Origin: Isurus oxyrinchus
Lineage: Eukaryota
Assembly: GCA_026770705.1 (NCBI GenBank)
Contig: JANJGN010000071.1
Span: 2,418,001 to 2,482,000 of the forward strand
Reading direction: 5' to 3'
DNA length: 64,000 bases
Shown: one piece after another, positions 29,760 to 63,340 of the stretch
Position numbering within the stretch: position 1 is the stretch's first letter
How the letters are laid out: every line of letters begins with the position of its first letter
The notes under the pieces: model-generated
Told to the model about the DNA's origin: nothing
The model's database searches: none
Seen by the model: the letters and a program-made list of their open reading frames with translations, nothing else
Made by a program: the position numbers and the translations under genes

Positions 29760-29875
29760 TCACTGTTTGTCTCTCCCAGACACAGACTCCAGTGATAGTG
29801 ATACCACAGCCACAAGGAATATCATAGCTCGTATTCCCAGGATCAGGATCACGTGCAGAATCTCTCCTCCACTGT
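29760..29875 (-). CDS. Siglec-like gene A TM/terminal exon (Y)SGGEILHVILILGIRAMIFLVAVVSLSLESVSGRDKQ*
   Basis: tctAG acceptor; phase 1 matches the preceding C2 exon; hydrophobic stretch with Arg; 1-nt deletion relative to the gene B copy. Confidence 0.8.
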
Positions 29876-31575
29876 CTAGAGAACACACAGAAAGAAATCA
29901 TCACTGACACTCCGCTTTCAATCTCTCACTCTGGCTGAACAATCAAGCTTCATATCACTGCAACATTTGCTGTAATATTGACCCATCCACTGGGATTCAA
30001 TGTGGAATGAATGTTTTCATTGTAAACACTCTAAGAGTGGACAATCGGAACTTTCCCCTTAGCGTGGAACATTGGTGAGAATGGATCATTGTGCTGTTGG
30101 ACTCCCTGTCCAATGTTTCTCTCCATCGCTGTGTACAGGATTGTGCTGTAGAAAATTCTGGAAACGTTTAGTGCAGGGTGGAAATCCATCTCGGACGCGT
30201 GTGCGAATCGGACAGGATCGAGATGGACTCCCCCATGGAATTACACCCCCCGCTTAATAAACAGTTCCAATCATTACCCAGAGAGAGGGGAGAATGTGGA
30301 ACTCACTCCCACTGGGAGTGGTTGAGGTGAACAGGATCGATGTATTTAAGGGGCAGGAGGGTCGGTAACCAGAGGGACACAGATTGACGAACCGGAGGGG
30401 GAGATGAGGAGAATTTGTTTTGACAGAGTGAGTTGTTGTGATCTGGAAGGTGCTGCCTGAAAGGGCGGTGGAAGCAGATTCAATAGGAACTTTCAAAAGG
30501 GAAATTGGATAAACACTTGAAGGAGGAAGATGGGGGCAAAGTGGAGTGGTGGTTAGTGGATCTGATTGGATAGAACATTGGAAGACCTGGCACAGGCACA
30601 ATGGGCTGAATGGCCTCCTCCTGTGCTGTATCATTCTCCGCTTCTATGATCTCTCCCCCAGTTAGTAACCACTCCAGATCCCTCTTGAAGGCAACAGAGA
30701 GACAGCAACCACCACACCCACTGACAGCACATTCCCGAGGATCCCTACTCTCTGGGAAAAGATGAACTCCCCAACATCCAGCCTATTCCTGCTTCCTGGA
30801 GAGTGTAAACCCTTCCCAGAGCGCGGATGAACCTTTCAATAAACTGTATTATCAAATCTACCATTTGATATATAAGTTAATTTCGATGAACTTACAGCAT
30901 GTGTTGCAAATTGTGAAGTGAAGTTGGCTGAAAAGCTGGGAGGTGCAAGGTTAAGCACCACAGTGCCATCACTGGTGGGAGGATGTAAAGACAGTGTGAC
31001 GTTTACATATGTTGCCCCCATTATAAACAGGGTCATTGGACATGATGGCAAAACTGAACACTGGAAAGGTGAGAAAATGAAGTAAGTTCTTCACTAACAG
31101 GAAATCCTTTCCTAAACTTCCTTATCTCTCCCTTTCTCTCAGATACACAAAAAATTTGACACAGGGCATTATAAGGAGGAGTTAGGGCAGGCAAGAGTTA
31201 GGGATTAGGAAGCTTCTTAAAGGAGGAGAGAGATACACGGAGAGTTGGGGAGTATCAGTTGGAATCTTTGTGCATGTGAGTTTCTGGAATAGACTTTGTA
31301 ATTTGGATATTCTTCGATAAATATGAATGGGAACACATATCCCAGAATCCAGGAGAACTCTCCAGTGCAGTACTGAGGGAGGTCAGGTAACTCACAGGGA
31401 AGTGTGTACTACTGTGTTTGTGTGAGTGTGTCTTTCTGTGTGCTCATGAGTGTGGGATTGTGTGTGTGCATGCAGTTTGGGTCTGTACATTTGTGAGTGC
31501 TTGTGTGTGTGTGGGAGAGCATCTGAGTATATGTGTTTGGAGATGTGAGAAATATTAAAGTCTGTGTACACTCAC

Positions 31576-31857
31576 ATTCCACAGTAATGGTTAGGAACCC
31601 CTCCATTGCTCCATGTTCATTCTCTGCCACACACTGATATTCTCCAGTGTCCCTGGATGTAACGTGAGGAATCACCAACCACAGCTCATTGTTGGAACTT
31701 GTTCTGTTCATTGGGACATTAAGATGTCGCCACGTCAGGTTAGAAGCTGGGGAGCTCTCGACAGAGCAGATTATCACTGCAGAATTCCCCTCAATTATAT
31801 TGATCGATGAAGCGTTAATCATATCTGGAGAAGTAATTGAGAGATTCCGTGGTGCGT
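31576..31857 (-). CDS. Siglec-like gene A second C2/I-set Ig exon (DAPRNLSI...CSVESSPASNLTW...DTGEYQCVAENEHG...TVE)
   Basis: 282 nt, phase 1-1, AG/GTGAGT; canonical C-W-YxC. Confidence 0.92.
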
Positions 31858-31989
31858 CTAAAAACAAATACAGATCAGTTAACTTACACTGACTGTGAAG
31901 CACTTTGAAAGACACTGAGAATGTGAAAGGTGTGATGTCAATGTAGGTTCTTTCACCACATAGCCCGTAATCCAGGCAGACACTTCAGT

Positions 31990-32390
31990 TCAGTATTGAG
32001 GGCGTGCTGCACTGTCAGAGGGTCAGTACTGAGGGAGTGCTGCACTGTCAGAGAGTCAGTACTGAGGGAGTGCTGCACTGTCGGAGGGTCAGTAGTGAGG
32101 GAGATCTGCACTGTTGGAAGGTCATTACTGAAGGAGTGCTGCACTGTCAAATGTTCGCTTCTGAGGGAGTGCTGCACTGTAGTAGGGACAGGGAGTGCTG
32201 CACTGTAGGAGGGACAGTACTGTGGGAGCGCTGCACTGTTGGAGGTTTACTGCTGAGGTAAAACTGCACAGTCAGAGCGTCAGTTTTGATTGACCAGTGC
32301 AATGTTGGAGGAGCACTACTGAGGGATCATTACACTATTAGAGAGTCAGTAATGAGGGAGTGCTGCACTGTAGAAGGGTCAGTGCTGAGG
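31990..32390 (-). repeat. 33-bp SINE-derived minisatellite
   Basis: Paralogous position to 60390-60880. Confidence 0.85.
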
Positions 32391-32402
32391 AGGCAAACAT
32401 GC

Positions 32403-32650
32403 TGTTATGTGTGTACTATAGGCCTCATGTGATAATGTGGAGTGCCAGGTACCTTTAAGAGAATACAAGTGGATAAACCATGTGACAGTACTGACCAATC
32501 ACTGGACAGTGTGGGCCACTGGTTAACTGTAAGTCTAGAGCTGGAGGTGGCTGTGGGAGCAGGCAAGGATTTAGTGCTCTGCCCTCTGTTACAATAAATA
32601 ATCAGCTTGTTCTAATGTCGGTCTCTCTTGGTTATTGATAGCGAGCATCA
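32403..32650 (+). mobile_element. Short solo-LTR-like element
   Basis: TGTT...ATCA termini and internal AATAAA; no clear TSD. Confidence 0.4.
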
Positions 32651-32659
32651 ACTAAGAAT

Positions 32660-32860
32660 AACTCAACAGGTCTGGCAGCTTCGGGGGAGAAGAAAAGAGT
32701 TGATGTTTCGAGTCCTCATGACCCTTCGACAGAACTGAGGTCATGAGGACTCGAAACGTCAACACTTTTCTCCTCCGCCGATGCTGCCAGACCTGCTGAG
32801 TTTTTCCAGGTAATTCTGTTTTTGTTTTGGATTTCCAGCATCCGCAGTTTTTTTGTTTTT
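32660..32860. mobile_element. Penelope-like short element with about 60-bp inverted repeat and degenerate hammerhead-like core
   Basis: actcaacaggtctggcagc...tttcgagtcctcatgacc / ggtcatgaggactcgaaa...gctgccagacctgctgagt; related pieces at about 12640-12730, 50160-50295 and 53905-54115. Confidence 0.55.
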
Positions 32861-32979
32861 ATCAACTAACAAGTGTATATGAAGGAGTGCAATTCGAGTT
32901 TACTCAACCAGTGAACTCATAGACTCAAGATATAAAACCAACAAACAGTCAGGGAGAGATGGACAATCCAACATGTGAT

Positions 32980-34200: not shown

Positions 34201-34378
34201 ATGAGTCCATGATGCACTGTCGGAGAGTCAGTAGTAAGGATGTACTGCCTGTCAGGGGTCACTTTTTACCAGTTAAAGACCAATGGTCTGTTGGTAAACA
34301 AAGTGCAGTGTGTGGGAGCTTGCTGTGCACATTTTATACTATTCCAGCGAATGTAGAATGAAGGATGTCGGTACTTAC

Positions 34379-34675
34379 CCTGCACAGTTAGTACGAGGGT
34401 CCGCTCCGATGAAACAGATGGATGTCTCACTCTGCAGCTGAGAGTGTGTCCGTGGTGTTTGAGTGATGGGATCAGGGTCAGAACAGAAGTATAGGTCAGA
34501 GTGACACCATGCTGAGTTACAGTGTTTGAGACTGATCCAGGTACGTCAGTGGGAATGTCCCAGGTTAAGACAGGTGCTGCTGTTCCATTGCACGTTGTGT
34601 TGAAGGTGCAGCTTACATCCACACGCTTTCCTGCAATAATTTCCGCAGGGAATATCGTGGGTTTATCTGTGAAAT
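34379..34675 (-). CDS. Siglec-like gene A first C2-set exon (DFTDKPTIFPAEIIAGKRVDVSCTFNTTCNG...LSCRVRHP...LTVQ)
   Basis: 297 nt, phase 1-1; extra Cys (TTC) typical of the Siglec domain-2 interdomain disulfide. Confidence 0.92.
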
Positions 34676-35403: not shown

Positions 35404-35440
35404 CAGAAACGTGAAGCTGGGTTACAGCATAGCAGCTGTA
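35404..35440 (-). pseudogene. Remnant 3' end of a second V exon (YSCYAVTQLHVS) inside the gene A intron
   Basis: Retains the GTAAGT donor and downstream intron colinear with gene B 50520-50800; upstream part replaced. Confidence 0.8.
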
Positions 35441-35479
35441 ACAGGGCGTTCGTGAGATTGTAACAGGATCATTGTGTAC

Positions 35480-36479: not shown

Positions 36480-38140
36480 TAAGACTCAAGGCTGAAGGCA
36501 CAGCTGCTGATGTTGGAGTGATGGGATCGGGGGATGGTCAAGAGGCTGGAATTGGAGGAGCGCAGAGACCTCAGAGGGTTGGAGTGACTGGAGGAGGTTA
36601 CAGAGATAGGGAGGGTTGTAGGGGCTGAAAAAGTTAAGAGAGATTGGGAGAGTGTAGGGTCTGGAGGAGATTACAGAGATAGTGAGGGTTGTAGTGATTG
36701 GAGGAGTTACAGAGATAGGGAGGGTTGTAGGGGCTGGAGGAGGTTACAGAGATAGCGAGGTTTGTAGTGATTGGATGAGTTATAGCGATAGGGAGGTTTT
36801 TAGGGGCTGGAAAAGTTAAGAGAGATTGGGAGAGTGTAGGGTCTGGAGGAGTTTGCAGAGGTAGGGAGGGTTGTAGTGACTGGGGCAGGTTACAGGGGCA
36901 GGGAAAGTTGTCGGGACTGGAGCAGGCTACAGAGATACGGAAGCTTTTAGGGGCAGGAGGAAGTTACAGAAATAGGGAGGTTTGTAGTGGCTGGAGGAGG
37001 TTGCAGAGATTGGTAGGTTTGTTGGGCAGGATGAATTTACAGATATAGTGAAGTGGTAAAGGCTTGAAGAGGTTACAGAGAATGAGATGGTTGTAGGTCC
37101 TGGAGGAGGACGAGGAGATTACAGAGATAGTGAGGAATCAAAGATGAAAATTGTGACATTGAGACTTTGCTTGACCAGGAGCCAGTCTCGGTCATCGAGC
37201 AGAGCGGGTGATAAGGGAACGGGACTTGGTGTGAGTAAGGACGTGGTCAGCATTTTTGGATGGCCTCAAGTTTATGGAGTGTAGACCGTGTGTTGGAACA
37301 GTCGAGTCTGGAGGTAATGAAGGCGTGGATGAGGGTTTCAGCAGCAAATGAGCTGAGACAGGGTGAAGTCGTGCGATGTTACGGAGGTGGAAATAGACGG
37401 TGTTAGTGAGGGCGCAGATATGAGGCCGGAAGCTCATCCCAGGATCAAATGGGACAACAAAGCTGTGAACAGATTGGCTTCAATCTCAGAGAGCTGCCAG
37501 GGAGAGGAATGGAGTTGGTAGCGAGGGAACAGAGTTTGGAGCGGGGAATGAAGACAATGGCTTCAGTCTTTCCAATATTTAATTGGAGGGAATTTCTGCC
37601 CATCCAGTACTGCATGTTGGATAAGCAGCCTGATAATTTAGCAGCTGTGGAGGAGTCGAGAGAGGTGGTGGTGAGGTAGAGCTGGGGATCCTCAGTGGAC
37701 AGGTGAAAACTAACACTGTTCAGATGATGCTGCAAAGCCATTGCAAGTGATTCTCTGGCTACGATGAGATGGATAAGAATGGAGCCAGGGGAGAGCAGTC
37801 CCACCCAGCTGGACGACAGTGGAGAGGTGTTGGAGGAGGATGGTGTGGTCGAGCGTGTCAAAGGCTGCAGACAGATCGAGAAGGACGAGGAGGGAAAGTT
37901 GACCTTTGTCACAGTCACACAGGATGCCATTTGTGACCTTGATAAGAGCTGTTTCAGCACAGTGGCTGGGGTGGGAACCTGATTGGAGGGATTCAAACAT
38001 GGAGTTCCGGGAAAGATGGGAACGGATTCGGGAGATGGAAACACGTTCAAGGACTTTGGAGGGGAAAGAGAGGCTGGAGATGGGACGGGGGTTTACACGG
38101 ACGGTGTGAGGGGTGGAAGGTGTAGTGGGGAGGAGATACT
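36480..38140 (-). mobile_element. L2 LINE fragment with embedded 37-bp minisatellite (36585-37130)
   Basis: RPISSLSFPSKVLER, HCAETALIKVTN, LVLLDLSAAFDTLDH and LQLNIGKTEAI; 37275-38140 duplicated at 61875-62745. Confidence 0.88.
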
Positions 38141-38364
38141 TCACTCAGGGGGGAGGTGTCATCACCCCTCAGCTCGGTTTACGTTACAGCTATGATGTGG
38201 ATTCAATCACACACAATAAGCTCATGGATCTGGGAGCAGAAATAGACAAATCATTAAAAATAGTGACGCTGGTTAACACGGCCAAAAAACAAGCAAATCA
38301 AACACTATTATTTCCCATTGAGTGTTGGATGTGAATTGGTGAGTAATTATAACACAGCACTTAC

Positions 38365-38742
38365 CAGAAACATGAAGCTGGGTTTCAGGGTAATAGTTAT
38401 GGCTCGGACCATTGTCAAATTTTATTGTGAACAAATAACGTCCGGCATCTTCCCATCTGATGTTGTTAATAATCAGGGAACAGTCGCCATCTTTCAGGTC
38501 TCCAGACAGTCGGCTCCGATGGTGGAACTGTGGTAACTCGTGACTGTGATCCTTGGAGTGAAAGGCTACAGACCATTTAGAATATTTGTTCCGTATGTAC
38601 CTTCTCATATACCAGATTCCAACATGTCGTTTCTTTACCAAATCTGATGGATAACTGTAATGACATGGAATCTGTACACACGAAACTTCCTGTGCTGTCA
38701 ACGCTCGTGGAGTGTCACCTTTCCACTCTTGTGACAGTCCAA
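38365..38742 (-). CDS. Siglec-like gene A V-set exon
   Basis: 378 nt, phase 1-1; Siglec cysteine pattern CVQIPC...W...GDLKDGDCSL; F strand reads YLFTIK (essential Arg absent). Confidence 0.92.
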
Positions 38743-44017: not shown

Positions 44018-44057
44018 CTTCGAGAAGTGACAGGAGGAAGTAGGATTTCCCGATCAT
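44018..44057 (-). CDS. Siglec-like gene A signal-peptide exon MIGKSYFLLSLLE
   Basis: Acceptor tttcacAG before 44097; ATG 44057; phase-1 donor GTAATA; in frame with the V exon; assembled protein 370 aa. Confidence 0.82.
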
Positions 44058-44507
44058 TGTCCACTCCCAGGTACTTCATAAGCTTCTGACTCTCAAACTG
44101 TGAAAGAGAAAGGAGTTAATGAGACCTCACCTCTTGTCCGACAGCTCTCAAGAGATCAGAACTGTTTTTGGACAATGTCTTTACAGACTAATTTGATTCT
44201 CTGTGGGATGATAGGTGCTCTGCAGAGAGTTACAAGGCTTTAAGAAAGAAAAACATTAAAGGATTTGCATTTCTATAGCACCTTTCACCACCTCAAGACG
44301 TCCCAAAGCTCATGTCTCTGCACTTCCCTCATCCCTTGAGCTAGAAAGATGTTCTGTACAACAGACTTGAGTCTCACACCCAGATCTCAATAATCAGTAG
44401 AAATCTTTCAAAGGCATCAATCATTGGAATCTGTCTTTATAAAGTCACAACATCAACAAAGGACGGTGTTGGTGGTGGAAGTGAATTCCAATCGTTCCGT
44501 TACTTAC

Positions 44508-44592
44508 CCAGGACCTGTCCGACTGCTCGCCTGGGGAGGAACTGCCCACACGCTCTGCTTGGGCTGAATGACCTCTTCCTGTGCTGCTCCCT
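44508..44592 (-). other. Putative 5' non-coding exon of gene A (copy of the gene C 85-nt cytoplasmic exon)
   Basis: GTAAGT donor; one visible difference from 56505-56589. Confidence 0.5.
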
Positions 44593-44650: not shown

Positions 44651-44869
44651 TAATCAGTGAGAAGATCGAGGATGTTTTGTGCTCTCAGCAAAACGTTTAC
44701 CATGTGTGATCTGTCAGCTCATATTTGGGCAGCTGTAGTCATGAAGCTTCTCCATTGGCTCCGTGGGATTAGACTCCTCCCCCTCACCACAGAGGCTGAA
44801 ACTCAGGCGATAGAGTCCCCAATACAGGTCTCGGGCCGTATGATACATTTCAACGACCCCTGTTATCAT

Positions 44870-47325: not shown

Positions 47326-50300
47326 TCAAACAGTCTGTCGACTTCCTTTCACTGTTTGTCTCTCCCAGACACAGACTCCAGTGATAGTGATAACCACAGC
47401 CACAAGGAATATCACAGCTCGTATTCCCAGGATCAGGATCACATGCAGAATCTCTCCTCCACTGTCTAGAGAACACACAGAAAGAAATCATCACTGACTC
47501 TCCGCTTTCAATCTCTCACTCTGGCTGAACAATCAAGCTTCATATCACTGCAACATTTGCTGTAATATTGACCCATCCACTGGGATTCAATGTGGAATGA
47601 ATGTTTTCCTTGTAAACACTCTAAGAGTGGACAATCGGAACTTTCCCCTTAGCGTGGAACATTGGTGAGAATGGATCATTGTGCTGTTGGACTCCCTGTC
47701 CAATGTTACTCTCCATCGCTGTGTACAGGATTGTGCTGTAGAAAATTCTGGAAACGTTTAGTGCAGGGTGGAAATCCATCTCGGACGCGTGTGCGAATCG
47801 AGCAGAATCGAGATGGACTTCCCCACGGACTTACACCCCCCGCTTAATAAACAGTTCCAATCTTTACCCAGAGAGAGGGGAGAATGTGGAACTCACTCCC
47901 ACAGGGATTGGTTGAGGTGAACAGTATCGATGTATTTAAGGGGCAGGAGGGTCGGTAACCAGAGGGACACAGATTGACCAACTGGAGGGGGAGATGAGGA
48001 GAATTTGTTTTGACAGAGCGAGTTGTTGTGATCTGGAAGGTGCTGCCTGAAAGGGCGGTGGAAGCAGATTCAACAGGAACTTTCAAAAGGGAAATTGGAT
48101 AAACACTTGAAGGAGGAAGATGGGGTAAAGTGGAGTGGTGGTTAGTGGATCTGATTGGATAGAACATTGAAAGACCTGGCACAGGCACAGTGGGCTGAAT
48201 GGCCTCCTCCTGTGCTGTATCATTCTCCGCTTCCATGATCTCTCCCCCAGTCAGTAACCACTCCAGATCCCTCTTGAAGGCGACAGAGAAACAGGAACTA
48301 CCACACCCACTGACAGCACATTCTCAAGGATCCCTACTCTCTGGGAAAAGATGAACTCCCCAACATCCAGCCTATTCCTGCTTCCCAGAGAGTGTAAACC
48401 CTTCAGGGAGGCACTGAGGAAGTTTTCAATAAAATGAATTATCAAATCTATCATTTGAGAAATAATTTAATTCTGATGAACTCACAGCTTGTGTAGCAAA
48501 CTGGGAAGTGGAGTTGCTTGAAAAGCTGGGAAACACAAGGATTAAGTGCTACAATGCCACCACTGGTGGGAGACTGTAACTACAGCGTGACGTTTACATA
48601 GGCAGTCATCATTATAAACAGGGGCATTGGACATACTGGGAAATATGTGCACTGGAAAGGTGAGTAAATGATGTAAGATTTTCACCAGCAGGAATTCTCT
48701 AACTAAACCTCTCCACTTCTCTCTTACTCTCAGATACACAAACAAAATCACACAGAATCAGATAAGGAGGAGTTGGGGCCGGTGATTGTTCGAAGGGTTA
48801 GCTTTCAGGAAGCTTCTTAAAGGGAGAGAGAGAGTTGGAGAGGCAGAGAGTATCTGTGAGTGTCTCTATGCATCTGAGTGTCTGTAATAGACTTTGTAAT
48901 TTCCATTTCTTCCATAAACATGATTGGGAACACAAATCCCAGAATCCAGGCCAACTCTCCAGTGCAGTACTCAGGTAAGCCACAGGGCAGTGTGTGCTAG
49001 TGTGTTTGTTTGTGAGTGTGTCTTTGTAATTGCTCATACATGTGTGTCTGCATGTGTCTATTTAGTTCTGTATATTTGTGTGTGTTTGTGCAATGTTTGA
49101 ATCTGAGAGAGATGTTGATGTCTGTGTACACTCACGTTCCACAGTGATGGTTATGAACCCCTCCACTGCTCCATGTTCATTCTCTGCCACACACTGATAG
49201 TCTCCAGTGTCCCGATATGTAATGGGAGGAATCACCAACCACAGCTCATTGTTGGAACTTGTTCTGTTCATTTGGACATTAAGATATCAGGGCAGGAATC
49301 AAGAAGCCCGTTCGCAGGATTACCAACAGAAAGAGAACCACAATTTATACTTAATGGGAAGAGAGTGCTGATTGGTTGGCAAGTGGTCTCTGATAGGTGG
49401 AGGTGTTGCCATGGAGAATGGTGTGTGCGAGATGTAAACTTTAGACAGCTTGTCTCTTTATTCAGTAATAATCAAATAAAGATCAATTAACTTCAATCGA
49501 CTGTGAAGCACTTTGAGAGGTCTGAGAATGTGGACACTGAGAACGGGCTGCACTGTCAGAGGGTCAGCGCTGAGGGAGTGCTGATGTAGAATGAAAGGTG
49601 TATGTACTTACCTTGCACAGTTAGTACGAGGGTCCGCTCCGATGAAACAGATGGATATCTCACTCTGCAGCTGAGAGTGTGTCCGTGGTGTTTGAGTGAT
49701 GGGATCAGGGTCAGAACAGAAGTATAGGTCAGAGTGACACCATGCTGAGTTACAGTGTTTGAGACTGATCCAGGTACGTCAGTGGGAGTTTCCCAGGTTA
49801 AGACAGGCGCTGCTGTTCCATTGCACGTTGTGTTGAAGGTGCAGCTTACATCCACATGCTTTCCTGCAATAATTTCAGCAGGGAATATCGTGGGTTTATC
49901 TGTGAAATCTAACAGACAGAGAATGGATCCTTTTAGAGAAATATAATGTGAAGCATCAGTTCAAATAGAAACCACAGTCCCACAAGAAAAAGCACTTTTA
50001 CAAGGATGATATCAGAACTGAGAGGTTACAATGATCAGGAAAGATTTTCTTGCTCTTTGGCAGTAGTGTTTCTGTCTCTCAGCTTAATACACGTTCACTC
50101 CGAGACATGTGAATTGAGAACACTGGATGAGAGAAGAGGCTCAGACCAGAGATTGGAGTTAAAAGCAGAATACTGCGGATGCTGGAAATCTGAAACCAAA
50201 ACAAAAATTGCTGGAAAGACTCAGCAGGTCTGACAGTATCAGTGGAGAGGAAGACAGGGTTAACGTTTCGAGTCCGTATGACTCTTCATCAGACCAGAGG

Positions 50301-51884
50301 TTTGAGTTCACTGGCTTCTCATTTCCTCAGTGATCTGGGTGATTTATCACCTTGTGGTTTGTTGGATCTTGCTGTGCACAAACTGCCTGCTGTGTTTTAC
50401 ATCTGTGACTACAATTCAGGAATAATTTCATTGGCTGTGAAGGGATTTGGATCCTCCTGAGGTGGTAAATTGCGCTGCAGAAATGCACATCTTTCTTTTA
50501 TCGATACGTCAGACTTTTAAACAGAACAGGAGAGATTGATGGGAGTGGATAACCTGATAATACAGTTAATGCTTTTCATCATCGATAGTAAAGTGAGTAT
50601 TAGAGGTTGCTTTAGGACTCAACTGGAAGTTATCACCAGGTTATTGAGAATCAGACAGTGTGTTATAATAAGCTGCGTTTTGTGTTAATATGTAAATGTC
50701 ACAGTTTGTGTTATCTCCCATTGAGTGTTGAATGTGAATTGTTGAGTAATTATAACACAGCACTTACCAGAAACGTGAAGCTGGGTTACAGGATAGTAGC
50801 TGTATCTATTCCAGCTGTCAAATTCTATTCTGAAAAAATAAGGTCCTGCATCTTCCCGTCTGATGTTGTTTATAATCAGGGAACAGTCGCCATCTTTCAG
50901 GTCTCCAGACAGCCGGGTACGATGGCGGAATCTTTGATCCCTGTGACTGTGACCCTCGGAATGAAAGGCTATAGACCATTTCGGCTGTGGGTTCCCATCT
51001 ATTCCTTTCAAGCAGATTCCGACACGTGATCTCCCTACGAAATTTGATAAGTAACTGTAATGACATGGAATCTGTACACACAACCATCCTGCGCTGTCAC
51101 CTCTCGTGAAGTGTCGCCTTTTCAATCTTGTGACAGTCCAACTGGGGAGAGAAATCTCAATATTTGACTCTGGATAGTTTGTAGATCAACTAGACTCGAT
51201 ATCCACCCCCTCCATCACTGGGGCTCAGTGGCTGCAGTGTGGACCATCTACAGGACACACAAGGAATTCCCCAAGGTTTCACAACGGATGGAAGAGAATC
51301 CTGGACACAGGAGTGGACAAGTTCATTCTACATTGGCTCATGGTCCTCAGGACCCTGTTTAGTGAAGCCAGTCTTCCACCCAACACAGTGTCTACAAGAT
51401 ACACAGGGAAACTGTGTAAACATCTCATCTCTCTACACTGACTGGTTTGAGCTTCAGTTTAACTTTCAGTATTTTTAAATTTCCATATTGTGGTTGCTAT
51501 GGTGAAACTGTGCAGGAAGTGCGAGGGCTGGACTCTCTGTCTATTCTCACTGCAGCTGTGATGTGGTCGTGGTGATTCTCAGTAAAATGAAACCCTCTGA
51601 GCTCCTCCATCCCCGAGGTTTAGGGAGTGAATTCCAGAGCTCAGGCCCCAGGCAGCTGAAGGCCCGGCCGCCAGTATTGGAGTGATGGGAATCGGGGGAT
51701 GGTCAAGAGGCCGGAATTGGAGTAGCACAGAGATCTGGGAAGTTGTTTGGGTGAGTTGCAGGAGGTTACAGAGATAAAGAGATAAGAATGATCTTTTACA
51801 AAGACTGTTAAACATAAATCTGTCCAAGCTGACGATGATATTACCTTGGAGAAGTGACAGGAGGAAGTAAGATTTCCCGATCAT
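47326..51884 (-). pseudogene. Siglec-like gene B, activating-type pseudogene. Exons: signal 51884-51845, V 51141-50768, C2 49908-49612, partial C2 49285-49136, TM 47465-47326
   Basis: V exon has TGA at 51124-51122, a 1-nt deletion (374 nt) and Trp->Cys; second C2 exon lacks its 5' half and acceptor; TM exon intact: SGGEILHVILILGIRAVIFLVAVVITITGVCVWERQTVKGSRQTV*. Confidence 0.88.
50258..50295 (-). ncRNA. Minimal type-I hammerhead ribozyme-like core in a Penelope-like short element
   Basis: Minus strand ggt-CTGATGA-a-gagtc-atacg-gactc-GAAAcgtta-acc; stem I only about 3 bp. Confidence 0.4.
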
Positions 51885-52334
51885 TGTCCACTCCCGGATA
51901 TTCCATCCACTTCTCACTCTCAAGCTGTGAAAGAGAAAGGAGTTAATGAGACCTCACCTCTTGTCCGACAGCTCTCGAGAGATCAGAACTGCTTTTAGAC
52001 AATGTCTTCACAGACTAATTTGATTCTCTGTGGGATGATAGGTGCTCTGCAGAGAGTTACAAGGCTTTAAGTAAGACAAACAATGATTGATTTGCATTTC
52101 TATAGCACCTTTCACTATCTCAGGACATCCCAAAGCTCATGTCTCTGCACTTCCCTCATCCTTTGAGCTAGAAAGATGTTCTGTACAACAGACTTGAGTC
52201 TCACACCCAGAATTCAATAATCAGTAAAAATCTTTCAAAGGCATCAATCATTGGAATCTGTCTTTATAAAGTCACAACATCAACAAAGGACGGTGTTGGT
52301 GGTGGAAGTGAATTCCAATCGTTCCGTTACTTAC

Positions 52335-52475
52335 CCAGGACCTGTCCGACTGCTCGCCTGGGGAGGAACTGCCCACACGTTCTGCTTGGGCTGAATGACC
52401 TCTTCCTGTGCTGCTCCCTATTTGTGTTTAATTAAAAAGGGTGCATGTGTCACTGTGAGTCAAAATGAGGAAGTG
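52335..52475 (-). promoter_or_regulatory. Gene B leader-exon copy with adjacent AP-1 and PU.1/ETS sites
   Basis: TGAGTCA 52456-52462, GAGGAAGTG 52467-52475, GTAAGT donor at 52334. Confidence 0.45.
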
Positions 52476-54459: not shown

Positions 54460-55234
54460 GCAGCTATATCTCATTCTGTTGTCAAAGCTGTCTCATCCAT
54501 CCATGACATATTGAAGAAGGTAAACCTGCAACCAATTTTTCACATCATAATTTCCTATGTTCATTGGCAACATCAATGTAAACATGTCACGCTGAAATGA
54601 TGTCCTGCCACCAGTGGTGGCACTGTAGCACATCTGTTATCCTCTGAGCTGCAGAGAATTTCTCAAATCTCCAATCAAATTGTTTCCCTGTTTCCGGGAT
54701 TGCTGATGGTTTTGCTCTTTAACGATGAAGTGTAAAATCCAAATATATATCTGAAAATACATTTGACTACAAAATGGTGAGTAAATTTTACCAATCTCCT
54801 CTGCTCCAATTATCCACCGATCCTGCATTTCATGATGTCTACACTGGCTGATGAATATTCTGTGAACACTGACAGACAGGAAGGTGAATAACTGAATGAA
54901 AATTAACTCATAATCACGGACACGGGATTGAATTTGTCCGTTCTGGGTCCTGGTACATCATCGAACGATACCTAAAGACATTTACAATCAGAATGGAGAG
55001 AATGATGTTTCCAACAGTGAGGGACAATTCTGAAGGAGGATGTTCAAATTGAAACCCACAGACAACCATCCTGGATAGATTATTCCGAAGAAATTCCATC
55101 AGATTGTAACAAGAGGTTTAAATCTATTTCCTGGGAGTGAGTTCCTGTGGATATTAGGAAGGTAAATTGGAGTTTTGAATGATTCTCCCGTTCTGTATTC
55201 TCCCCACACTGTGTGTGTCTCATTCTTGCTCAGT

Positions 55235-55351
55235 TTATAAATTCCCATAAACAGAATCCTTGGCAAAATCACAGTTTGCGTAAAGATCATCATCTGCATC
55301 AGGATTGACTCCGCGGTGAGATTTCATTTCCAGATCCTTCTCATCTTTCTT
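55235..55351 (-). CDS. Siglec-like gene C terminal cytoplasmic exon KKDEKDLEMKSHRGVNPDADDDLYANCDFAKDSVYGNL*
   Basis: ctattacAG acceptor; phase 0; two tyrosine motifs; TAA 55237-55235. Confidence 0.85.
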   Translation of the reverse strand, partial: KKDEKDLEMKSHRGVNPDADDDLYANCDFAKDSVYGNL

Positions 55352-55449
55352 CTGTAATAGAAACAGAAATGATCAGAGTGACAATCAGAGTGATCAGTGT
55401 TTAGTATTATTGATCCAAATCAAAAATTGCACCCACAGTAGATACATTA

Positions 55450-55760
55450 ATTATTGATACTGAATGCGGTTTGATTATTGAAACTGAACGGGGTTTGATT
55501 ATTGAATCTGAACGGGGTTTGATTATTGATTCTGAACGCGGTTTGATGATTGATACTGAAAGGGGTTTGATTATTGATACTGAACCGGGTTTGATTATTG
55601 ATAATAATCGGAGTTTGATTATTGATATTAAATGGGGTTTGATTATTGATTCTGAACGGTGTTTGATTATTGATACTGAATGGGGTTTGATTATTGATAC
55701 TGAACGGGGTTTGATTATTGATTCTGAACGGGGTTTGATTATTGATTCTGAACGGTGTTG
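55450..55760. repeat. 24-bp minisatellite (ATTGATACTGAACGGGGTTTGATT)n in the last intron of gene C
   Basis: About 13 units, directly visible. Confidence 0.9.
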
Positions 55761-55888
55761 GGTGTGAGTTTGGTTGGGTTTGGGAGTGACTGTATAAAAC
55801 ATTGCAGATACAGGACTGGAGCAGCCATATCAATAACCAGGCTACTGGAGCAGCTGAGAGGCTGGGGATCCTGTGGTGTGTGACTCAC

Positions 55889-55993
55889 CTGATTCCTCAA
55901 AGCCCAACCACGCTCACAATTTTCATAAACAGGACCTCGATATTCATCAACACGATGGTTCGATTTGATTCCTGCTTTCCCCTCGCCTCTCTT
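55889..55993 (-). CDS. Siglec-like gene C cytoplasmic exon KRGEGKAGIKSNHRVDEYRGPVYENCERGWALRNQ
   Basis: 105 nt, phase 0-0, ctattacAG / CAG|GTGAGT. Confidence 0.85.
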
Positions 55994-56504
55994 CTGTAAT
56001 AGAGATGGAAATGGACAGAGTGACAATCAACATGATGTGTATTCGGTGTTGGGTTTGATTATTAGGGAGAGGGTTCCAGATTTCCACTCCCCTTTGTGTG
56101 AAGAAGTGCTTCCTGACATCACCCCTGAACGGCCTGGCTCCAATCTGAAGTTCCAGCCCCCTTGTTCTGGACTCCACCCGACCCCCACCACCCACCCCCA
56201 CCCGAGGGAATAGCTTCTCTCTATCGACCCTATCGAGTGTTTAATCAGTTTGAACCCCTCAGTTAGATCACTTCTTAATCTTCTAGACCCGAGGGAATAT
56301 AATCGTAGACTGTGTGTAACCTGTCTGCACAATTTACCCAGAAAGATGTTCTGTACAACAGACTTGAGCCTCACACCCAGATCTCAATAATCAGTGGAAA
56401 TCTTTCAAAGGCATCAATCATTGGAATCTGTCTTTATAAAGTCACAACATCAACAAAGGACGGTGTTGGTGGTGGAAGTGAATTCCAGTCGTTCCGTTAC
56501 TTAC

Positions 56505-56589
56505 CCAGGACCTGTCCGACTGCTCGCCTGGGGAGGAACTGCCCACACGCTCTGCTTGGGCTGAATGATCTCTTCCTGTGCTGCTCCCT
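56505..56589 (-). CDS. Siglec-like gene C first cytoplasmic exon (K)GSSTGRDHSAQAERVGSSSPGEQSDRSW
   Basis: 85 nt; the only candidate found that bridges phase 2 (TM exon) to phase 0 with an open frame; GTAAGT donor; weak acceptor. Confidence 0.6.
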
Positions 56590-57243
56590 CTGTGTGTTTA
56601 ATTAGAAAGGGTGAATGTGTCACTGTGAGTCAAATCAGGAATTGGGGAACAATTGTGAAAACCCTTTCACTGAAACGTAGGGCCTTAGTGTTGTGTTGTA
56701 AGCAAACTGTTAACCCTTTGTGTCCTGACTCTGTGACGTGATTCCTGTGTAAAGCTGAGCAGTCGTTGAGCGAGTTTCAATTCACTGCTCACTCCAGGTG
56801 TTGAGGTGGATCTTCTGAAGGAGCATATGTTGCTCAGCGCTCCTTAAAAATGTGAGAGACTGAACAACGTGTAAGAGGACGAGAGAGAGAATGAGAAGGA
56901 GAGCATTAGTGGAGATTGGAGAGAGAGTGAATGAAACATGGAAAATGGAAAGAGATTGCATTCACTAACAAAAGAAAGGTTTTTATTTGTATAGCAGCAT
57001 TCACAAACTCAGGAGGTCACAAGGTATTTTATGGTCCAGGTCAACACTGCCAGTTACAGGACTGAGTTGTGAAACAGTGAGTGTTGGATGAGATGTTAAA
57101 CAGTAGGTGAACATCAAAGCTCTTCAGGGGCTGTGGAGGGTTTTGGATTGTAAAAGGTGCTATAGAAATGCAAGTTCTTTCTATAAGGAGAGAAGTTTGA
57201 AGAAAACATGTTCAAAAACAACCAATTAATCCTTCACACTTAC

Positions 57244-57340
57244 TTTCTCACACACTTGAAGATGAAGAATCCACTCAGTCCAACACTCAAACAGATTCCA
57301 GCTCCAAGCAATCCTGCTTTCCATTCATTGGAATCTCGCC
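57244..57340 (-). CDS. Siglec-like gene C TM exon (R)RDSNEWKAGLLGAGICLSVGLSGFFIFKCVR(K)
   Basis: ttttacAG acceptor; 97 nt; phase 1-2; GTAAGT donor; uncharged TM followed by basic stop-transfer residues. Confidence 0.88.
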
Positions 57341-57579
57341 CTGTAAAATCAGCCAATGAATGACTCCGGTACAGTTTGAGAATGGTTCCCTATGTACATG
57401 TAGTAATTCTGAACTTGTGAAGTGATATTGTCTATGCATGAAAGGTCTATACAAATAACATTTATCTATGTAATATTTATTGATAATATCCATGTACATG
57501 CAGGTTTCTATAAGGAGGATTCACATATAACAGAGGTGCCAAGCTGCTGAGGTGACACACAGGACTACATACACACCAA

Positions 57580-58570
57580 ACAGCGGAAACAACATGCTAT
57601 AGACAGAGCAAAGCGATCCCACAACCAACGGGTCAGATCTAAGCTCTGCAGTCCTGCCACATCCAGTCATGAATGGTGATGGACAATTAAAGATCTAACA
57701 GGAGGAGGATGTTCCACAAATATCCCCATCCTTAATGATGGGGGAGCTCAGCACATCAGTGCAAACGACAAGGCTGAAGCATTGGCAACCATGTTCAGCC
57801 AGAAGTGCTGAGTGGATGCTCCATCTCGGCCTCCTCCAGAGGGGCCCAGCATCACAGATGTCAGCTTTCAGACAATTCGATTGACTCCACGTGACATCAG
57901 GAATCAGCTGATGATACTGGATACAGCAAAGACTATTGGCCCTGGTAACAACCCGGCAACAGGAAATAATGTGGCTACAAGAGCGGGTCAGAGGCTGGGA
58001 ACTCTGTGGTGAGTAATTCAACTCCTGACCCCCCAAAGCCTGTCCACCATCGGACAAGGCACAAGTCAGGATTGTGATGGAATAATCTCCACTTGCCTGA
58101 ATAAGTGCAGCTCTAACAACACTCAAAAACCTCAACACCATCCAGGAGCAGCTTGTTTGATCGACAGCCCATCCACCAGCATAAACATTCATACCCTCCA
58201 CCACTGGCACACAATGGCAGCAGTGTGCACCATCTACAAGATGCACTGCAGCAACTCACCAAGGCTCCTTCGACAGCACCTTCCAAACTCTAAACCTCTT
58301 CCACTGAGACAGTTCCAAGTCAGTGTGGTGTGTGACTTGGAGGTGACCATGAGCTGGTGGTCTGCCCTGGGACTTGGAACTATATCGGCCGTTCCTTCAC
58401 CGTCGCTGGGTCGAAATCCTGGAACTCCCTCCCTAACAGCACTGTGGGTGCGCCTGCACCACATGGACTGCAGTGGTTAAAGAAGGCAGCTCACCACCAC
58501 CTTCTCAAGGGGCAGTTACAGATGGGCAATAATTTCTGGCTTTGTAAACAATGCCCATATCCCATGAGCT
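57580..58570 (+). mobile_element. Non-LTR retrotransposon fragment with internal deletion
   Basis: Same family as 25220-26300; 3' end AGSKSWNSLPNSTVG. Confidence 0.8.
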
Positions 58571-58605
58571 AATAAAAACAGAATGTTCAATTCTGTGTAA
58601 CTCAC

Positions 58606-58887
58606 GTTCCACAGTGATGGTTATAAATCCCTCCACTGCTCCATGTTCATTCTCTGCCGCACACTGATAGTCTCCAGTGTCCCTGGATGTAACGTGAGGA
58701 ATCACCAACCACAGCTCATTGTTGGAACTTGTTCTGTTCATTGGGACATTAAGATGTCGCCACGTCAGGTTAGAAGCTGGGAAGCTCTCGACAGAGCAGA
58801 TTATCACTGCAGAATTCCCCTCAATTATATTGATCGATGAAGCGTTAATCATATCCAGAGAAGTAATTGATGGGTTCCGTGGTGCAT
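58606..58887 (-). CDS. Siglec-like gene C third C2/I-set exon
   Basis: 282 nt, phase 1-1, intact. Confidence 0.92.
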
Positions 58888-59973
58888 CTAAATACAAATA
58901 AAGGTATCATTGTGAGCAAACACAGTGCACAGCAAGACTCCATGATACATCTCTCTCTATTTGGTGTCTATGTGCATTTCAAGGTTCTTTCCTGTTTTAA
59001 GTTCCTATGTCAACTTTTATGATGGTCACTGCCAGCGGTTTCCTTTCTGTCCATTCATGGGAAGTGGATGTATCTATCTAGACCAGCATTTACGACCCAT
59101 TCCTAATTGCCCTTGAGGAGGTGGTGGTGAGTTTTTCACCCCCACAGAATTCCCAGCCTCTGATCTGCTCCTGTAGCCACAGTATTTATGGCCGGTCCAG
59201 TTAGTAGTTTGGTTAACATCCCCCAGGATGTTGATCATGGGGGATTCAGCGATGGTAAAGTCACTGAATATCAAGGGGAGATGGTTAGATTCTCTCTTGT
59301 TGGACATGATCACTGCCTGGTGCTTGTGTGGCACGAACATTACTTGTCATTTCTTAGCCCGTGTTGAGTGTTTTTCAGCTCTTGCTGCATGTGGATATGT
59401 AAACTGTCACGCTGTAATTACAGCCTTCCACCAGAGGAGACACTGTCAGGCTAGAAGAAAAGAAAGTGTCTTTCACATCATCAGGATGTTCACGGGGATT
59501 TGACAGTGGAGGAATTGCTTTAGAAAAATGGGGTATTGAGTGATAAACCTACAATTCTCTGTGCAGGTGATTGCTTGTCCAATACAGGGTCTAGTTCAGC
59601 TGATGTCGTCAGTGTTTCAGAGCAGAATCTGGAGCAACACTCCAGTGCAGCACAGGGAGAACAGACAACTCACACATGTCTGTGTGTGTGTGTGAGCAAG
59701 CACACGTGTGATTCTGTGTATGTTTCCTTCTGTGTGTGAGCATGCAGGTGTGCACACCTGTGCACATGTGGGATTGCACATGAATGCTTGTTTGTGTGCA
59801 CCTGNNNNNNNNNNNNNNNNNNNNNNNNNNNNNNNNNNNNNNNNNNNNNNNNNNNNNNNNNNNNNNNNNNNNNNNNNNNNNNNNNNNNNNNNNNNNNNNN
59901 NNNNNNNNNNNNNNNNNNNNNNNNNNNNNNNNNNNNNNNNNNNNNNNNNNNNNNNNNNNNNNNNNTAACTCAC

Positions 59974-60255
59974 ATTCCACAGTGATGGTTATGAATCCCT
60001 CCACTGCTCCATGTTCATTCTCTGCCACACACTGATAGTCTCCAGTGTCCCTGAATGTAACGTGATAAATCACCAACCACAGCTCATTGTTGGAACATGT
60101 TCTGTTCATTGGGACATTAAGATGTTGCCACGTCAGGTTAGATGCTGGGAAGCTCGCGACAGAGCAGATTATCACTGCCGAATTCCCCTCAATTATATTG
60201 ATCGATGAAGCATTAATCATATCAAGAAAATTAATTGAGAAATTCTGTGGTGCAT
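59974..60255 (-). CDS. Siglec-like gene C second C2/I-set exon
   Basis: 282 nt, phase 1-1, intact; donor lies next to an N-gap. Confidence 0.9.
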
Positions 60256-60389
60256 CTATAAACAAATAAACATCAATTAACTTAAACTGACTGTGAAGCA
60301 CTTTGAAAGACACTGAGAATGTGAAAGGTATGATATCAATGTAGGTTCTTTCACCACAAAGCCCGTAATCCAGGCAGAGACTTCAGTTC

Positions 60390-60880
60390 AGTACTGAGGG
60401 AGTGCTGCACTGTCAGAGGGTCAGTACTGAGGGAGTGCTGCACTGTCAGAGAGTCAGTACTGAGGGAGTGCTGCACTGTCAGAGAGTCAGTACTGAAGGA
60501 GCACTGCACCGTCAGAGGTTCAGTACTGAGGGAGCGCGGCACTGTCAGAGGGTCATTACTGAGGGAGTGCTGTACTGTTGGTGGGTAAGTACTGAGGGAG
60601 TGCTGCACTGTCAGAGAGTCAGTACTGAGGGAGTGCTGTACTGTCAGAGGTTCAGTACATAGGGACAGCTGCACTGTCTGATGGTCAGTACAGAGGGGGT
60701 GCTGCACTGTCGGAGGGTCAGAACTGGGGGGGTGCTGCAGTGTGGGAGGGCCAGTTCTGAGGGAGCACTGCACTTTTGAAGGGTCAGTACTGAGGGAGTG
60801 CTGCACTATAGAAGGTTCAGTACTGAGGGAGTGCTGCAGTGTTGGAGAGTCAGTATTCAGGGACTGCTGCAGTGTCAGAG
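60390..60880 (-). repeat. 33-bp SINE-derived minisatellite
   Basis: Directly visible. Confidence 0.88.
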
Positions 60881-61000
60881 GTGAATTTGTATCAGTTAAA
60901 GACTGTTGATTTGTTGTTAAACACAATGCAGTTGTGGGATCTTGCAATGTGCTATGTAGAGCTTTTTAGCTAATGTAGAATGAAGGGTGTCCGTTCTTAC

Positions 61001-61297
61001 CTTGCACAGTTAGTACGAGGGTCTGCTCCGATGAAACAGATGGATATCTCACTCTGCAGCTGAGACTGTGTCCGTGGTGTTTGGGTGATGGGATCAGGGT
61101 CAGAACAGAAGTATAGGTCAGAGTGACACCATGCTGAGTTACAGTGTTTGAGACTGATCCAGGTACGTCAGTGGGAGTGTCCCAGGTTAAGACAGGTGCT
61201 GCTGTTCCATTGCACGTTGTGTTGAAGGTGCAGCTTACATCCACACGCTTTCCTGCAATAATTTCAGCAGGGAATATCGTGGGTTTATCTGTGAAAT
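61001..61297 (-). CDS. Siglec-like gene C first C2-set exon
   Basis: 297 nt, phase 1-1; 5 aa differences from the gene A copy. Confidence 0.92.
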
Positions 61298-61874
61298 CTA
61301 ACAGACAGAGAATGGATCCTTTTAGAGAAATATAACGTGAAGCATCAGTTCAAATAGAAACCACAGTCCCACAAGAGAAAGCACTTTTACAAGGATGATA
61401 TCAGAACTGAGAGGTTACAATGATCAGGAGAGAATTTCCTGCTTTGAGACTTTGGTGTTTCTGTCTCTCAGCTTAATGCATGTTCACTCCAAAAAACTTG
61501 AACTGATAATAGTGGGTGAGGGTGGAGGAGCAGACCAGAGTTTGGAGTGCACTACCCCATCATTCACCCAGCGATCTGGGCCATTTGTTACTTTGCAATT
61601 TGTGGGAGCTTGCTGTGTGCAAATTGGCTGCTGTGTTTCTCACATTACAACAGTAAATACAATTCAGGAATCAGCTCATTGGCTGTGAAGTGATTTGGTA
61701 CATTCTGAGGTGGTGAAAGGTGCTATAGAAATGTGAATCTTACTTCTGTCGATATGTCGGACTTCGAGACAGGATTAGAGATTGATGGGAGTGGATAACC
61801 TGATAACATTGATGGACCAGTCAATATATTTAATCATTGATATTAAAGTGAGTATTAGAGGTTGCTTTCGGACT

Positions 61875-62745
61875 GTGGAGTGTGGAGCGTGTGTTGGAAC
61901 AGTCGAGTCTGGAGGTAATGAAGGCGTGGATGAGGGTTTCAGCAGCAGATGAGCTGAGACAGGGTGATGTCGTGCGATGTTACGGAGGTGGAAATAGACG
62001 GTGTTAGTGAGGGTGCAGATATGAGGCCGGAAGCTCATCTCAGGATCAAATGGGACAACAAAGCTGTGAACAGATTGGCTTCAATCTCAGAGAGCTGCCA
62101 GGGAGAGGAATGGAGTTGGTAGCAAGGGAACAGAGTTTGGAGCGGGGAATGCAGGCAATGGCTTCAGTCTTTCCAATATTTAATTGGAGGGAATTTCTGC
62201 CCATCCAGTACTGGATGTCGGATAAGCAGCCTGATAATTTAGCAGCAGTGGAGGAGTCGAGAGAGGTGGTGGTGAGGTAGAGCTGGGGATCCTCAGTGGA
62301 CAGGTGAAAACTAACACTGTTCAGATGATGCTGCAAAGCCATTGCAAGTGATTCTCTGGCTACGATGAGATGGATAAGAATGGAGCCAGGGGAGAGCAGT
62401 CCCACCCAGCTGGACGACAGTGGAGAGGTGTTGGAGGAGGATGGTGTGGTCGAGCGTGTCAAAGGCTGCAGACAGATCGAGAAGGACGAGGAGGGAAAGT
62501 TGACCTTTGTCACAGTCACACAGGATGCCATTTGTGACCTTGATAAGAGCTGTTTCAGCACAGTGGCTGGGGTGGGAACCTGATTGGAGGGATTCAAAGA
62601 TGGAGTTCCGGGAAAGATGGGAACGGATTCGGGAGATGGAAACACGTTCAAGGACTTTGGAGGGTAACGAGAGGCTGGAGATGGGACGGGGGTTTACACG
62701 GACAGTGTGAGGGGTGGAAGGTGTAGTGGGGAGAAGACACTTCAC
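61875..62745 (-). mobile_element. L2 LINE fragment shared with the gene A intron
   Basis: Near-identical to 37275-38144. Confidence 0.88.
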
Positions 62746-62965
62746 TCAGGGGGGAGGTGTCATCACCCCTCAGCTCGGTTTACGTTACAGCTATGATGTG
62801 GATTCAGTCACACACAATAAGCTCATGGATCTGGGAGCAGAAATAGACAAATCATTAAAAATAGTGATGCTGGTTAACACGGCCAAAAAACAAGCAAATC
62901 AAACACTATTATTTCCCATTGAGTGTTGGATGTGAATTGTTGAGTAATTATAACACAGAAATTAC

Positions 62966-63340
62966 CAGAAACGTGAAGCTGGGTTTCAGGACGGTCGTTG
63001 TATCTATTCCTGTTGTCAAATTCTATTCTGAAATAATAATATCCTTCATCTCCCCATCTGATGTTGTTTATAAACAGGGAACAGTGACCATCTTTCAGGT
63101 CTCCAGACAGCTGAGTCCGATGGTGGAACCGTGGTAACTTGCGATTATGATCCTTGGAGTGAAAGGCTATAGACCATTCATTCCATGTTTCCCAATTCCT
63201 TCTCATATACCAGATTCCGACAGGTGATCTCGATACTAAATATGATGGATAACTGTAATGACATGGAATCTGTACACACAAACCTTCCTGCGCTGTCACC
63301 TCTCGTGGAGTGTCACCTTTCCACTCTTGTGGTAGTCCAG
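62966..63340 (-). CDS. Siglec-like gene C V-set exon with essential Arg (YYYFRIEF)
   Basis: 375 nt, phase 1-1; CVQIPC / GIW / GHCSL / YYFR Siglec signature; signal exon not found within the window. Confidence 0.93.

Follow-up and report, generated by a model that had tools for sequence, protein, structure and literature searches.

Whether activating and inhibitory Siglecs stand opposite each other at one locus of a cartilaginous fish is the question raised by a 64,000-nucleotide (nt) stretch of the genome of Isurus oxyrinchus (assembly GCA_026770705.1, contig JANJGN010000071.1, positions 2,418,001 to 2,482,000 of the forward strand), referred to here as the window. In the usual account, activating Siglecs arose recently in mammals, as a defence against pathogens that turn inhibitory Siglecs to their own use. 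Here we report the analysis of three genes of the window, A, B, and C, in the span from 29760, the final base of the gene A stop codon, to 63340, the first base of the V-set (V) exon of gene C. The initial annotation of this span had proposed a paired activating/inhibitory system of Siglec-like receptors. We conclude that the stretch is probably part of a tandem, fast-evolving multigene cluster of shark Siglecs, closest to those of the great white shark and the basking shark, in which related genes carry opposite tail modules. The predicted system is paired at the level of the family, not as a couple of receptors for the same ligand.

Genes A, B, and C form a head-to-tail array within 35 kb. 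A six-frame reading placed all of their immunoglobulin (Ig) exons on the minus strand, and a plus-strand reading was therefore dropped. Self-BLAST divides the array into three paralogous units: unit A spans about 28.3-44.6 kb, unit B about 45.9-52.5 kb, and unit C about 55.2-63.6 kb. Their non-exon and flanking DNA is 88-94% identical. Exon borders were set from the alignment of paralogues and the reading of splice sites, and all searches were done exon by exon, never on a joined (spliced) protein model. Every Ig exon of the three genes is in phase 1/1, so that any of them can be repeated or skipped with the frame kept. The genes were probably built by the duplication of units and the exchange of exons. 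Of the four gaps (runs of N) in the window, only that at 59805-59965 falls within the studied span.

On sequence grounds, all three genes are members of the Siglec family, as the initial annotation had it. The top 17 matches of the gene C V exon among solved structures (PDB) are all Siglecs, in the order Siglec-5 (E-value 7.9e-14), sialoadhesin (2.1e-13), Siglec-10, CD33, Siglec-8, Siglec-7, and MAG (3.6e-10), with CD22 at 1.4e-3, and the gene C motif YYFRIE aligns on YFFRVE of Siglec-5, which carries the arginine essential for this family. In Pfam the V exons match V-set and Ig_CD22 (3.2e-13 and 8.9e-09 for gene C), the C2-1 exons match C2-set_2, and the C2-2 exons match Ig_3/I-set. The three-cysteine V pattern of Siglecs (C-x4-C plus a strand-E cysteine, no strand-F cysteine; …CVQIPC…CSL…) and the extra C2-1 cysteine for an interdomain disulfide (…SCTFNTTCNG…SCRV) are both found in A and C, as read from their letters alone. 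The essential strand-F arginine is present in gene C (YYFRIEF) and in the broken V exon of gene B (YFFRIEF), and is a threonine in gene A (LFTIKF). The CD33-related tail pattern, an inhibitory tyrosine-based immunoreceptor motif (ITIM) LxYAxL followed by TEYSEI, is absent from A, B, and C.

The genes share their C2 exons and have two kinds of 3' end. The C2-1 exons are 97.6-98.0% identical in nucleotides (95-96% in amino acids), and the C2-2 exons 92-95% in nucleotides. The 3' ends are unrelated: in BLAST comparisons within the window, the transmembrane (TM) exon of gene A matches only that of gene B, and the TM, 105-nt, and last exons of gene C match nothing else. Genes A and B have in common the segment ILHVILILGIRA…, a basic TM segment with a short, motif-free tail. 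Its exon (hereafter Arg-TM) has a strong pyrimidine tract and a phase-1 acceptor that fits C2-1 donors as well as C2-2 donors, and encodes SGGEILHVILILGIRA(V/M)IFLVAVV…. The tail numbers 9 residues in gene A (…VAVVSLSLESVSGRDKQ, stop) and 12-17 in gene B (…VAVVITITGVCVWERQTVKGSRQTV, stop), with no tyrosine in either. This alternative 3' module of the family, a single exon for a TM helix that has an arginine in mid-membrane and for a tyrosine-free tail of 9-17 residues, would by the general immunoreceptor rule pair with an adaptor of the DAP12 or FcRgamma type, having an acidic TM residue and a tyrosine-based immunoreceptor activation motif (ITAM), and would activate.

Gene C is predicted to encode a type-I receptor with a sialic-acid-type V domain, three C2 domains, and an uncharged TM segment. 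Its tail of 101 residues, read exon by exon as KCVRK / GSSTGRDHSAQAERVGSSSPGEQSDRSW / KRGEGKAGIKSNHRVDEYRGPVYENCERGWALRNQ / KKDEKDLEMKSHRGVNPDADDDLYANCDFAKDSVYGNL, stop, holds three YxN tyrosines, the last in the C-terminal SVYGNL, which fits the ITIM consensus (S/I/V/L)xYxx(I/V/L). Such a receptor would most likely damp signalling by recruiting SH2-domain phosphatases (SHP) after tyrosine phosphorylation, perhaps together with Grb2. The motif LGIRA occurs twice in the window (29826-29840 and 47416-47430) and SVYGNL once (55238-55255). All motifs and exon borders named in the initial annotation are present on the minus strand where it placed them, and its description of near-identical C2 exons with unrelated 3' ends, of a single TM exon with LGIRA and a short tyrosine-free tail in A and B, and of a neutral TM segment with three cytoplasmic exons ending in SVYGNL in C was borne out, the last by RNA joints.

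These joints were obtained from Logan contigs of four RNA runs, coded X1 (from organism A) and X5, X6, and X7 (from organism B), aligned to 55201-61200; Logan contigs give no expression levels. The contigs show six canonical GT..AG joints on the minus strand, each of them exactly at a predicted exon border of gene C (Table 1). One X5 contig comprises C2-2b, the TM exon, and the 85-nt exon, another the 85-nt, 105-nt, and last exons with about 0.8 kb of 3' untranslated region, and two X7 contigs end at 59974 with the first 8 nt of a C2-2 exon. We conclude that the two sides of the gap belong to one gene with four Ig domains, and because the gap is intronic, between two phase-1/1 exons, its length has no bearing on the reading frame. 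A leader exon for gene C was not found in the window; the gene is otherwise intact. A direct splice from the gene C TM exon to the last exon was rejected as out of frame, the RNA showing two exons in between. A joint from 57340 to 59975 (TM to C2-2a, with C2-2b skipped) is ambiguous, the last 29 nt of the C2-2 exons differing at two positions, and was not used. In one X1 contig, on which we do not rely, a joint from 57244 to 55993 skips the 85-nt exon and shifts the frame; this form would give gene C a 32-residue tyrosine-free tail ending REARGKQ…VVGL, and may be an ITIM-less isoform or noise.

The same contigs bear on whether the locus is distorted by its assembly, with the two C2-2 exons at the gap being one exon assembled twice and the frameshifts of genes A and B being sequencing errors. 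One C2-2 copy does abut the N gap, the window has its four gaps, and the indels are of single bases, but the copies are 92.9% identical and differ in their upstream flanks, X6 and X7 contigs cover both, and RNA joins them. In gene B, moreover, the stop arose by substitution, and the C2-2 loss through replacement of 130 nt. Orthologous models, of the basking shark (P0167) and the white shark (P0254), have two C2-2 domains as well, and we consider such an artefact very improbable. The basking shark model has the architecture of gene C from the leader to ...SVYGNV, and P0254 matches the 3' half of gene C at 86-97%, with 97% identity in both the TM and 105-nt exons; the TM exon is 100% identical to that of white shark P0260.

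The Arg-TM exon was compared with 260 fetched proteins by local BLAST. The identity is 93% with P0172 and P0175 and 89% with P0197 of the white shark, 78-82% with proteins of Scyliorhinus torazame, 79% with S. canicula, and 80% with Chiloscyllium punctatum; the final residues are mostly the same, and the stop is shared. The exon is thus conserved in annotated Siglec-like proteins of three shark orders (white shark, two catsharks, and two bamboo sharks), and more so (78-93%) than the V domains (60-75%), a pattern that a helix in contact with a partner would be expected to show. In RefSeq models the exon follows either C2-1 (…TVQ-D-SGGE) or C2-2 (…TV(E/Q)-Y-SGGE), with junction codons that fit the donors of the window; in most of the annotated Arg-TM models there are two Ig domains, C2-1 leading straight into the TM exon. 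Among the fetched proteins, no similarity was detectable to mammalian Lys-TM segments or to the Arg-TM segment of stingray P0252 (E about 50), and the former result is compatible with an independent origin. The 48 residues of the Arg-TM end of P0006, too short a query for a word-indexed search, retrieved two catshark proteins only.

A HMMER search against 1.84 billion representatives gave 933 hits, the best of them elasmobranch proteins, and 116 elasmobranch RefSeq proteins, named Siglec-10/12/13/14, CD33-like, or MAG-like, were found at E<1e-20. Three tail types recur across the family. The short Arg-TM tail occurs, among the fetched proteins, in sharks only. Sharks, rays, and skates have the C type, whose end is Y-x-N followed by a hydrophobic residue, and a turtle CD22-like protein has similar endings. 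In the third type, seen in members from other sharks, an ITIM is combined with an ITIM-like motif (LLYANINF…TEYAQIRF), as in mammalian CD33-related Siglecs. The annotated shark models belong to the same family, with the same exon modules and the three tail types (P0167 being of gene C architecture, P0172 and P0175 ending in Arg-TM), but none matches the V exons of the window above about 75%, so the window genes seem to be unannotated or those of another lamniform species. The family is already in RefSeq for many sharks and rays, and so is not new, but it is apparently undescribed. In full-text literature searches, which did not cover subscription journals, we found no paper on cartilaginous-fish Siglecs with activating forms, and a 2025 review covers Siglec pairs only in mammals (PMC13358205).

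Several observations weigh against a paired system and limit the form it could take. The first concerns the V domains, which are 63-69% identical among A, B, and C (82-85% in nucleotides). Synonymous divergence (dS, Nei-Gojobori) is 0.18-0.38 in V vs 0.01-0.04 in C2-1, and the ratio of nonsynonymous to synonymous divergence (dN/dS) in V is 0.6-1.3. As the V exons diverge more than the flanking DNA and the C2-1 exons are nearly identical, the V exons have separate, older histories and C2-1 has been homogenised. Since 31-37% of the V amino acids differ and dS there is clearly higher than in the flanking introns, A, B, and C are unlikely to share a ligand. A strict pair, in which A or B and C would bind one sialylated ligand through matched ectodomains and give opposite signals, as SIGLEC5/14 do, would agree with the tandem linkage, the 98% identity of C2-1, and the opposite tail modules. 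It is nonetheless quite improbable, given the divergence of V, the threonine of gene A, and the broken V exon of gene B, and given that mammalian pairs are more than 99% identical in their V domains (PMC13358205). The near-identical ligand-binding domains of SIGLEC5/14-type pairs are thus not found among A, B, and C.

The preferred reading, of opposite tails within one family, has known parallels. SIGLEC5/14 and SIGLEC11/16 are likewise linked genes, one with an ITIM-type tail and the other with a basic TM residue and a short tail, and their activating copies are prone to pseudogenisation and arginine loss, as seen here in B and A. In the mammalian pairs, V and the first C2 domain are near-identical by gene conversion, whereas here only C2-1 is homogenised; the shark TM segment has arginine in the context LGIRAVIF instead of the mammalian lysine, and the inhibitory tail is rich in YxN instead of having an ITIM plus TEYSEI. 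Teleost NITR/LITR, skate MDIR, and Xenopus CEACAM (PMC5112662) also form clusters that mix ITIM-tailed members with short-tailed members having a charged TM segment, but these are other Ig families, none of them a sialic-acid-type V-set lectin. The white shark has a closer pair, encoded on a single 1.8-Mb scaffold: P0197 ends in Arg-TM and P0151 in an ITIM plus TEYAQI tail, and their ectodomains, about 90% identical, diverge exactly at the TM exon.

Further points of the same adverse kind concern the tails themselves. Asn at +2 after Tyr is the preference of the Grb2 SH2 domain, and VYENC, LYANC, and SVYGNL all have Asn at +2, so that a Grb2 site fits them no less than an ITIM. A survey of 2014 detected no shark FcRgamma chain (PMC4016189). 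Between the RNA contigs and the window there are differences of 1-4%, so that the contigs may come from alleles or a very close paralogue. The tails might not be an activating/inhibitory pair at all, the Arg-TM form being a decoy or non-signalling receptor or having another partner, and the gene C tail signalling via Grb2 (pYxN), as part of CD22 does. The YxN context of all three gene C tyrosines, the similar endings in the turtle protein, and the adjoining hepcidin gene and MAG-like V exon would suit this possibility, and the YxN motifs resemble the Grb2 site of CD22. We regard it as improbable, because no part of the protein is better conserved across shark orders than the TM arginine with its surroundings, as is typical of adaptor contact, and because SVYGNL fits the ITIM consensus. 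The cluster resembles CD22/MAG in lying beside hepcidin and a MAG/sialoadhesin-like V exon and in the Ig_CD22 matches of its V domains, but these are far closer to Siglec-5, Siglec-10, CD33, and sialoadhesin than to CD22, and its members have 3-4 Ig domains, not 7.

The remaining adverse evidence lies in the state of genes A and B. In the V exon of gene B, TGG has become TGA five codons past the acceptor and a 1-nt deletion follows 16 codons later, and the 5' half of its C2-2 exon has been lost with the acceptor. A rescue of gene B via an upstream ATG was dropped: the frame through the V exon is open, but the N-terminus has no signal peptide. From the reading of its exons, gene B is most aptly classed as an Arg-TM-type pseudogene. 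In gene A, the essential arginine has been lost (AGA to ACA, Thr), and the end of the TM exon is frameshifted by the deletion of one T. The gene B frame of this exon, which extends to …ITITGVCVWERQTVKGSRQTV, stop, is ancestral by comparison with other sharks; gene A ends …SLSLESVSGRDKQ, stop, and its old ending is still readable one frame over. Its leader and four coding exons are open, with good splice sites, and its shortened TM segment retains 24 hydrophobic residues, the arginine included. The remaining helix (ILHVILILGIRAMIFLVAVVSLSL) could still span the membrane, and gene A may still work, without the canonical sialic-acid arginine.

The locus might alternatively hold no working activating gene, with A decaying like B, only C functional, and the activating type surviving elsewhere in the genome. 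The two derived changes of gene A, the clearly broken gene B, a 5 kb insert in the leader-V intron of gene A, and a reverse-transcriptase fragment in its next intron all speak for such decay. The open exons, good splice sites, and arginine-bearing hydrophobic helix of gene A speak against it, and arginine loss is common in working Siglecs and other family members. We judge this outcome unlikely. Of the paired system proposed at the outset, then, the two tail types on shared C2 exons, the conserved Arg-TM segment, and the splicing in RNA of the SVYGNL tail to the gene C ectodomain stand, and a pairing of matched, intact partners does not, with B broken, A altered, and V divergent. The features of the three genes are listed in Table 1.

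Table 1. Exons of genes A, B, and C, RNA joints of gene C, and copies of the 85-nt exon (window positions)
Feature	Position	Strand	Remark
Gene A leader exon	44018..44057	-	MIGKSYFLLSLLE; phase 1
Gene A V-set exon	38365..38742	-	Open; essential arginine replaced by threonine (LFTIKF)
Gene A C2-1 exon	34379..34675	-	Pfam; paralogue alignment
Gene A C2-2 exon	31576..31857	-	Pfam; paralogue alignment
Gene A Arg-TM exon	29760..29875	-	1-nt deletion relative to B and other sharks; end …VAVVSLSLESVSGRDKQ, stop
Gene B leader exon	51845..51884	-	MIGKSYFLLSLLQ; phase 1
Gene B V-set exon	50768..51141	-	Broken in leader frame (TGA and 1-nt deletion); rest open, YFFRIEF kept
Gene B C2-1 exon	49612..49908	-	Intact
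Gene B C2-2 remnant	49136..49285	-	3' half alone; no acceptor
Gene B Arg-TM exon	47326..47465	-	Ancestral open frame …ILILGIRAVIFLVAVVITITGVCVWERQTVKGSRQTV, stop
Gene C V-set exon	62966..63340	-	Phase 1/1; essential arginine and three-cysteine pattern kept
Gene C C2-1 exon	61001..61297	-	C2-set_2, three cysteines; RNA joint to 60255
Gene C C2-2a exon	59974..60255	-	Intact (acceptor, open frame, GTGAGT donor); RNA joints both sides
Assembly gap, C2-2a/C2-2b intron	59805..59965		N run starts 8 nt past GTGAGT donor
Gene C C2-2b exon	58606..58887	-	92.9% identical to C2-2a; RNA joint to 57340
Gene C TM exon	57244..57340	-	Uncharged AGLLGAGICLSVGLSGFFIF KCVRK; phase 1 to phase 2; RNA joints both sides
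Gene C cytoplasmic exon 1, 85 nt	56505..56589	-	GSSTGRDHSAQAERVGSSSPGEQSDRSW; RNA joints both sides
Gene C cytoplasmic exon 2, 105 nt	55889..55993	-	KRGEGKAGIKSNHRVDEYRGPVYENCERGWALRNQ; located via RNA joints
Gene C last coding exon	55235..55351	-	…DDLYANCDFAKDSVYGNL, stop; ITIM-fitting C-terminus
RNA joint C2-1 to C2-2a	61001 to 60255	-	Run X1
RNA joint C2-2a to C2-2b, across N gap	59974 to 58887	-	One X1 contig, 21 nt on short side
RNA joint C2-2b to TM	58606 to 57340	-	Runs X5, X6
RNA joint TM to 85-nt exon	57244 to 56589	-	Runs X5, X6, X7
RNA joint 85-nt to 105-nt exon	56505 to 55993	-	Run X5
RNA joint 105-nt to last exon	55889 to 55351	-	Runs X5, X6
85-nt exon copy, gene A	44508..44592	-	Upstream of A leader, probably a 5' exon
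85-nt exon copy, gene B	52335..52417	-	Upstream of B leader

The surroundings of the three genes contain repeats, retroelement remains, and other genes. A 33-nt tandem repeat array (8275-8760, 28089-28309, 31990-32390, 44866-45890, and 60386-60880) recurs in the introns and flanks of A, B, and C and elsewhere in the window, and borders several blocks of paralogous similarity. The reverse-transcriptase fragment of gene A (37713-38144, minus strand; Pfam RVT_1, 4.4e-09, only this copy having been scanned) lies in the V-to-C2-1 intron, and a paralogous stretch is found in the same intron of gene C (62314-62745, minus strand) and not in B; being common to the same intron of A and C, the insertion is older than their duplication. 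The last exon of a hepcidin gene (22657-22806, plus strand; …QKRMGRQQRCRFCCNCCNWREPNETCGICCRF, stop; Pfam Hepcidin, 1.7e-07) stands beside the cluster, a neighbourhood that recalls human HAMP-MAG-CD22. On the plus strand, a Siglec-type V-set exon at 13209-13616, with best matches to sialoadhesin (2.5e-10) and MAG (4e-09), is all but identical to the N-terminal end of white shark P0254. Its open frame runs as far as the site of the essential arginine, and there gag-like open reading frames of a retroelement start (13567-14690). An out-of-frame ATG precedes the leader ATG by 22 nt in gene A (MKYLGVDNDREILLPP…, 44057-44080, minus strand) and gene B (MEYPGV…, 51884-51910, minus strand), and is the start of some RefSeq models of other sharks.

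The 85-nt tail exon of gene C recurs about 0.5 kb upstream of the leaders of genes A and B, in copies that are 98-99% identical to it and share its GTAAGT donor. One X6 contig, ending at 56505, runs on into leader-exon sequence (a comparison made by eye only), and the white shark model P0260 has the order TM exon, 85-nt exon, leader exon. The 85-nt exon may double as a 5' exon or join read-through between neighbouring genes. We tentatively raise a wider proposal, which we hold to be unlikely: the Arg-TM exon would be an old, shark-wide activating Siglec module of an origin independent of the mammalian Lys-TM Siglecs, and the 85-nt exon would be both a tail exon of the inhibitory gene and a 5' exon spliced to the next leader. 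If this is true, an adaptor with an acidic TM residue and an ITAM is implied in cartilaginous fish, and with it a balancing of activating and inhibitory Siglecs early in jawed vertebrates, and the dual role of the 85-nt exon could couple the transcription of neighbouring genes of opposite sign.

Decay and loss of sialic-acid binding have likewise been reported for primate activating Siglecs. The shark locus illustrates the swapping of tail exons, the decay of an activating copy (B), and the loss of the sialic-acid arginine (A), and its LGIRA helix could serve as bait for a shark ITAM adaptor. With an Arg-TM module conserved over shark orders next to ITIM-type relatives, cartilaginous fish would be seen to have arrived at the same solution.

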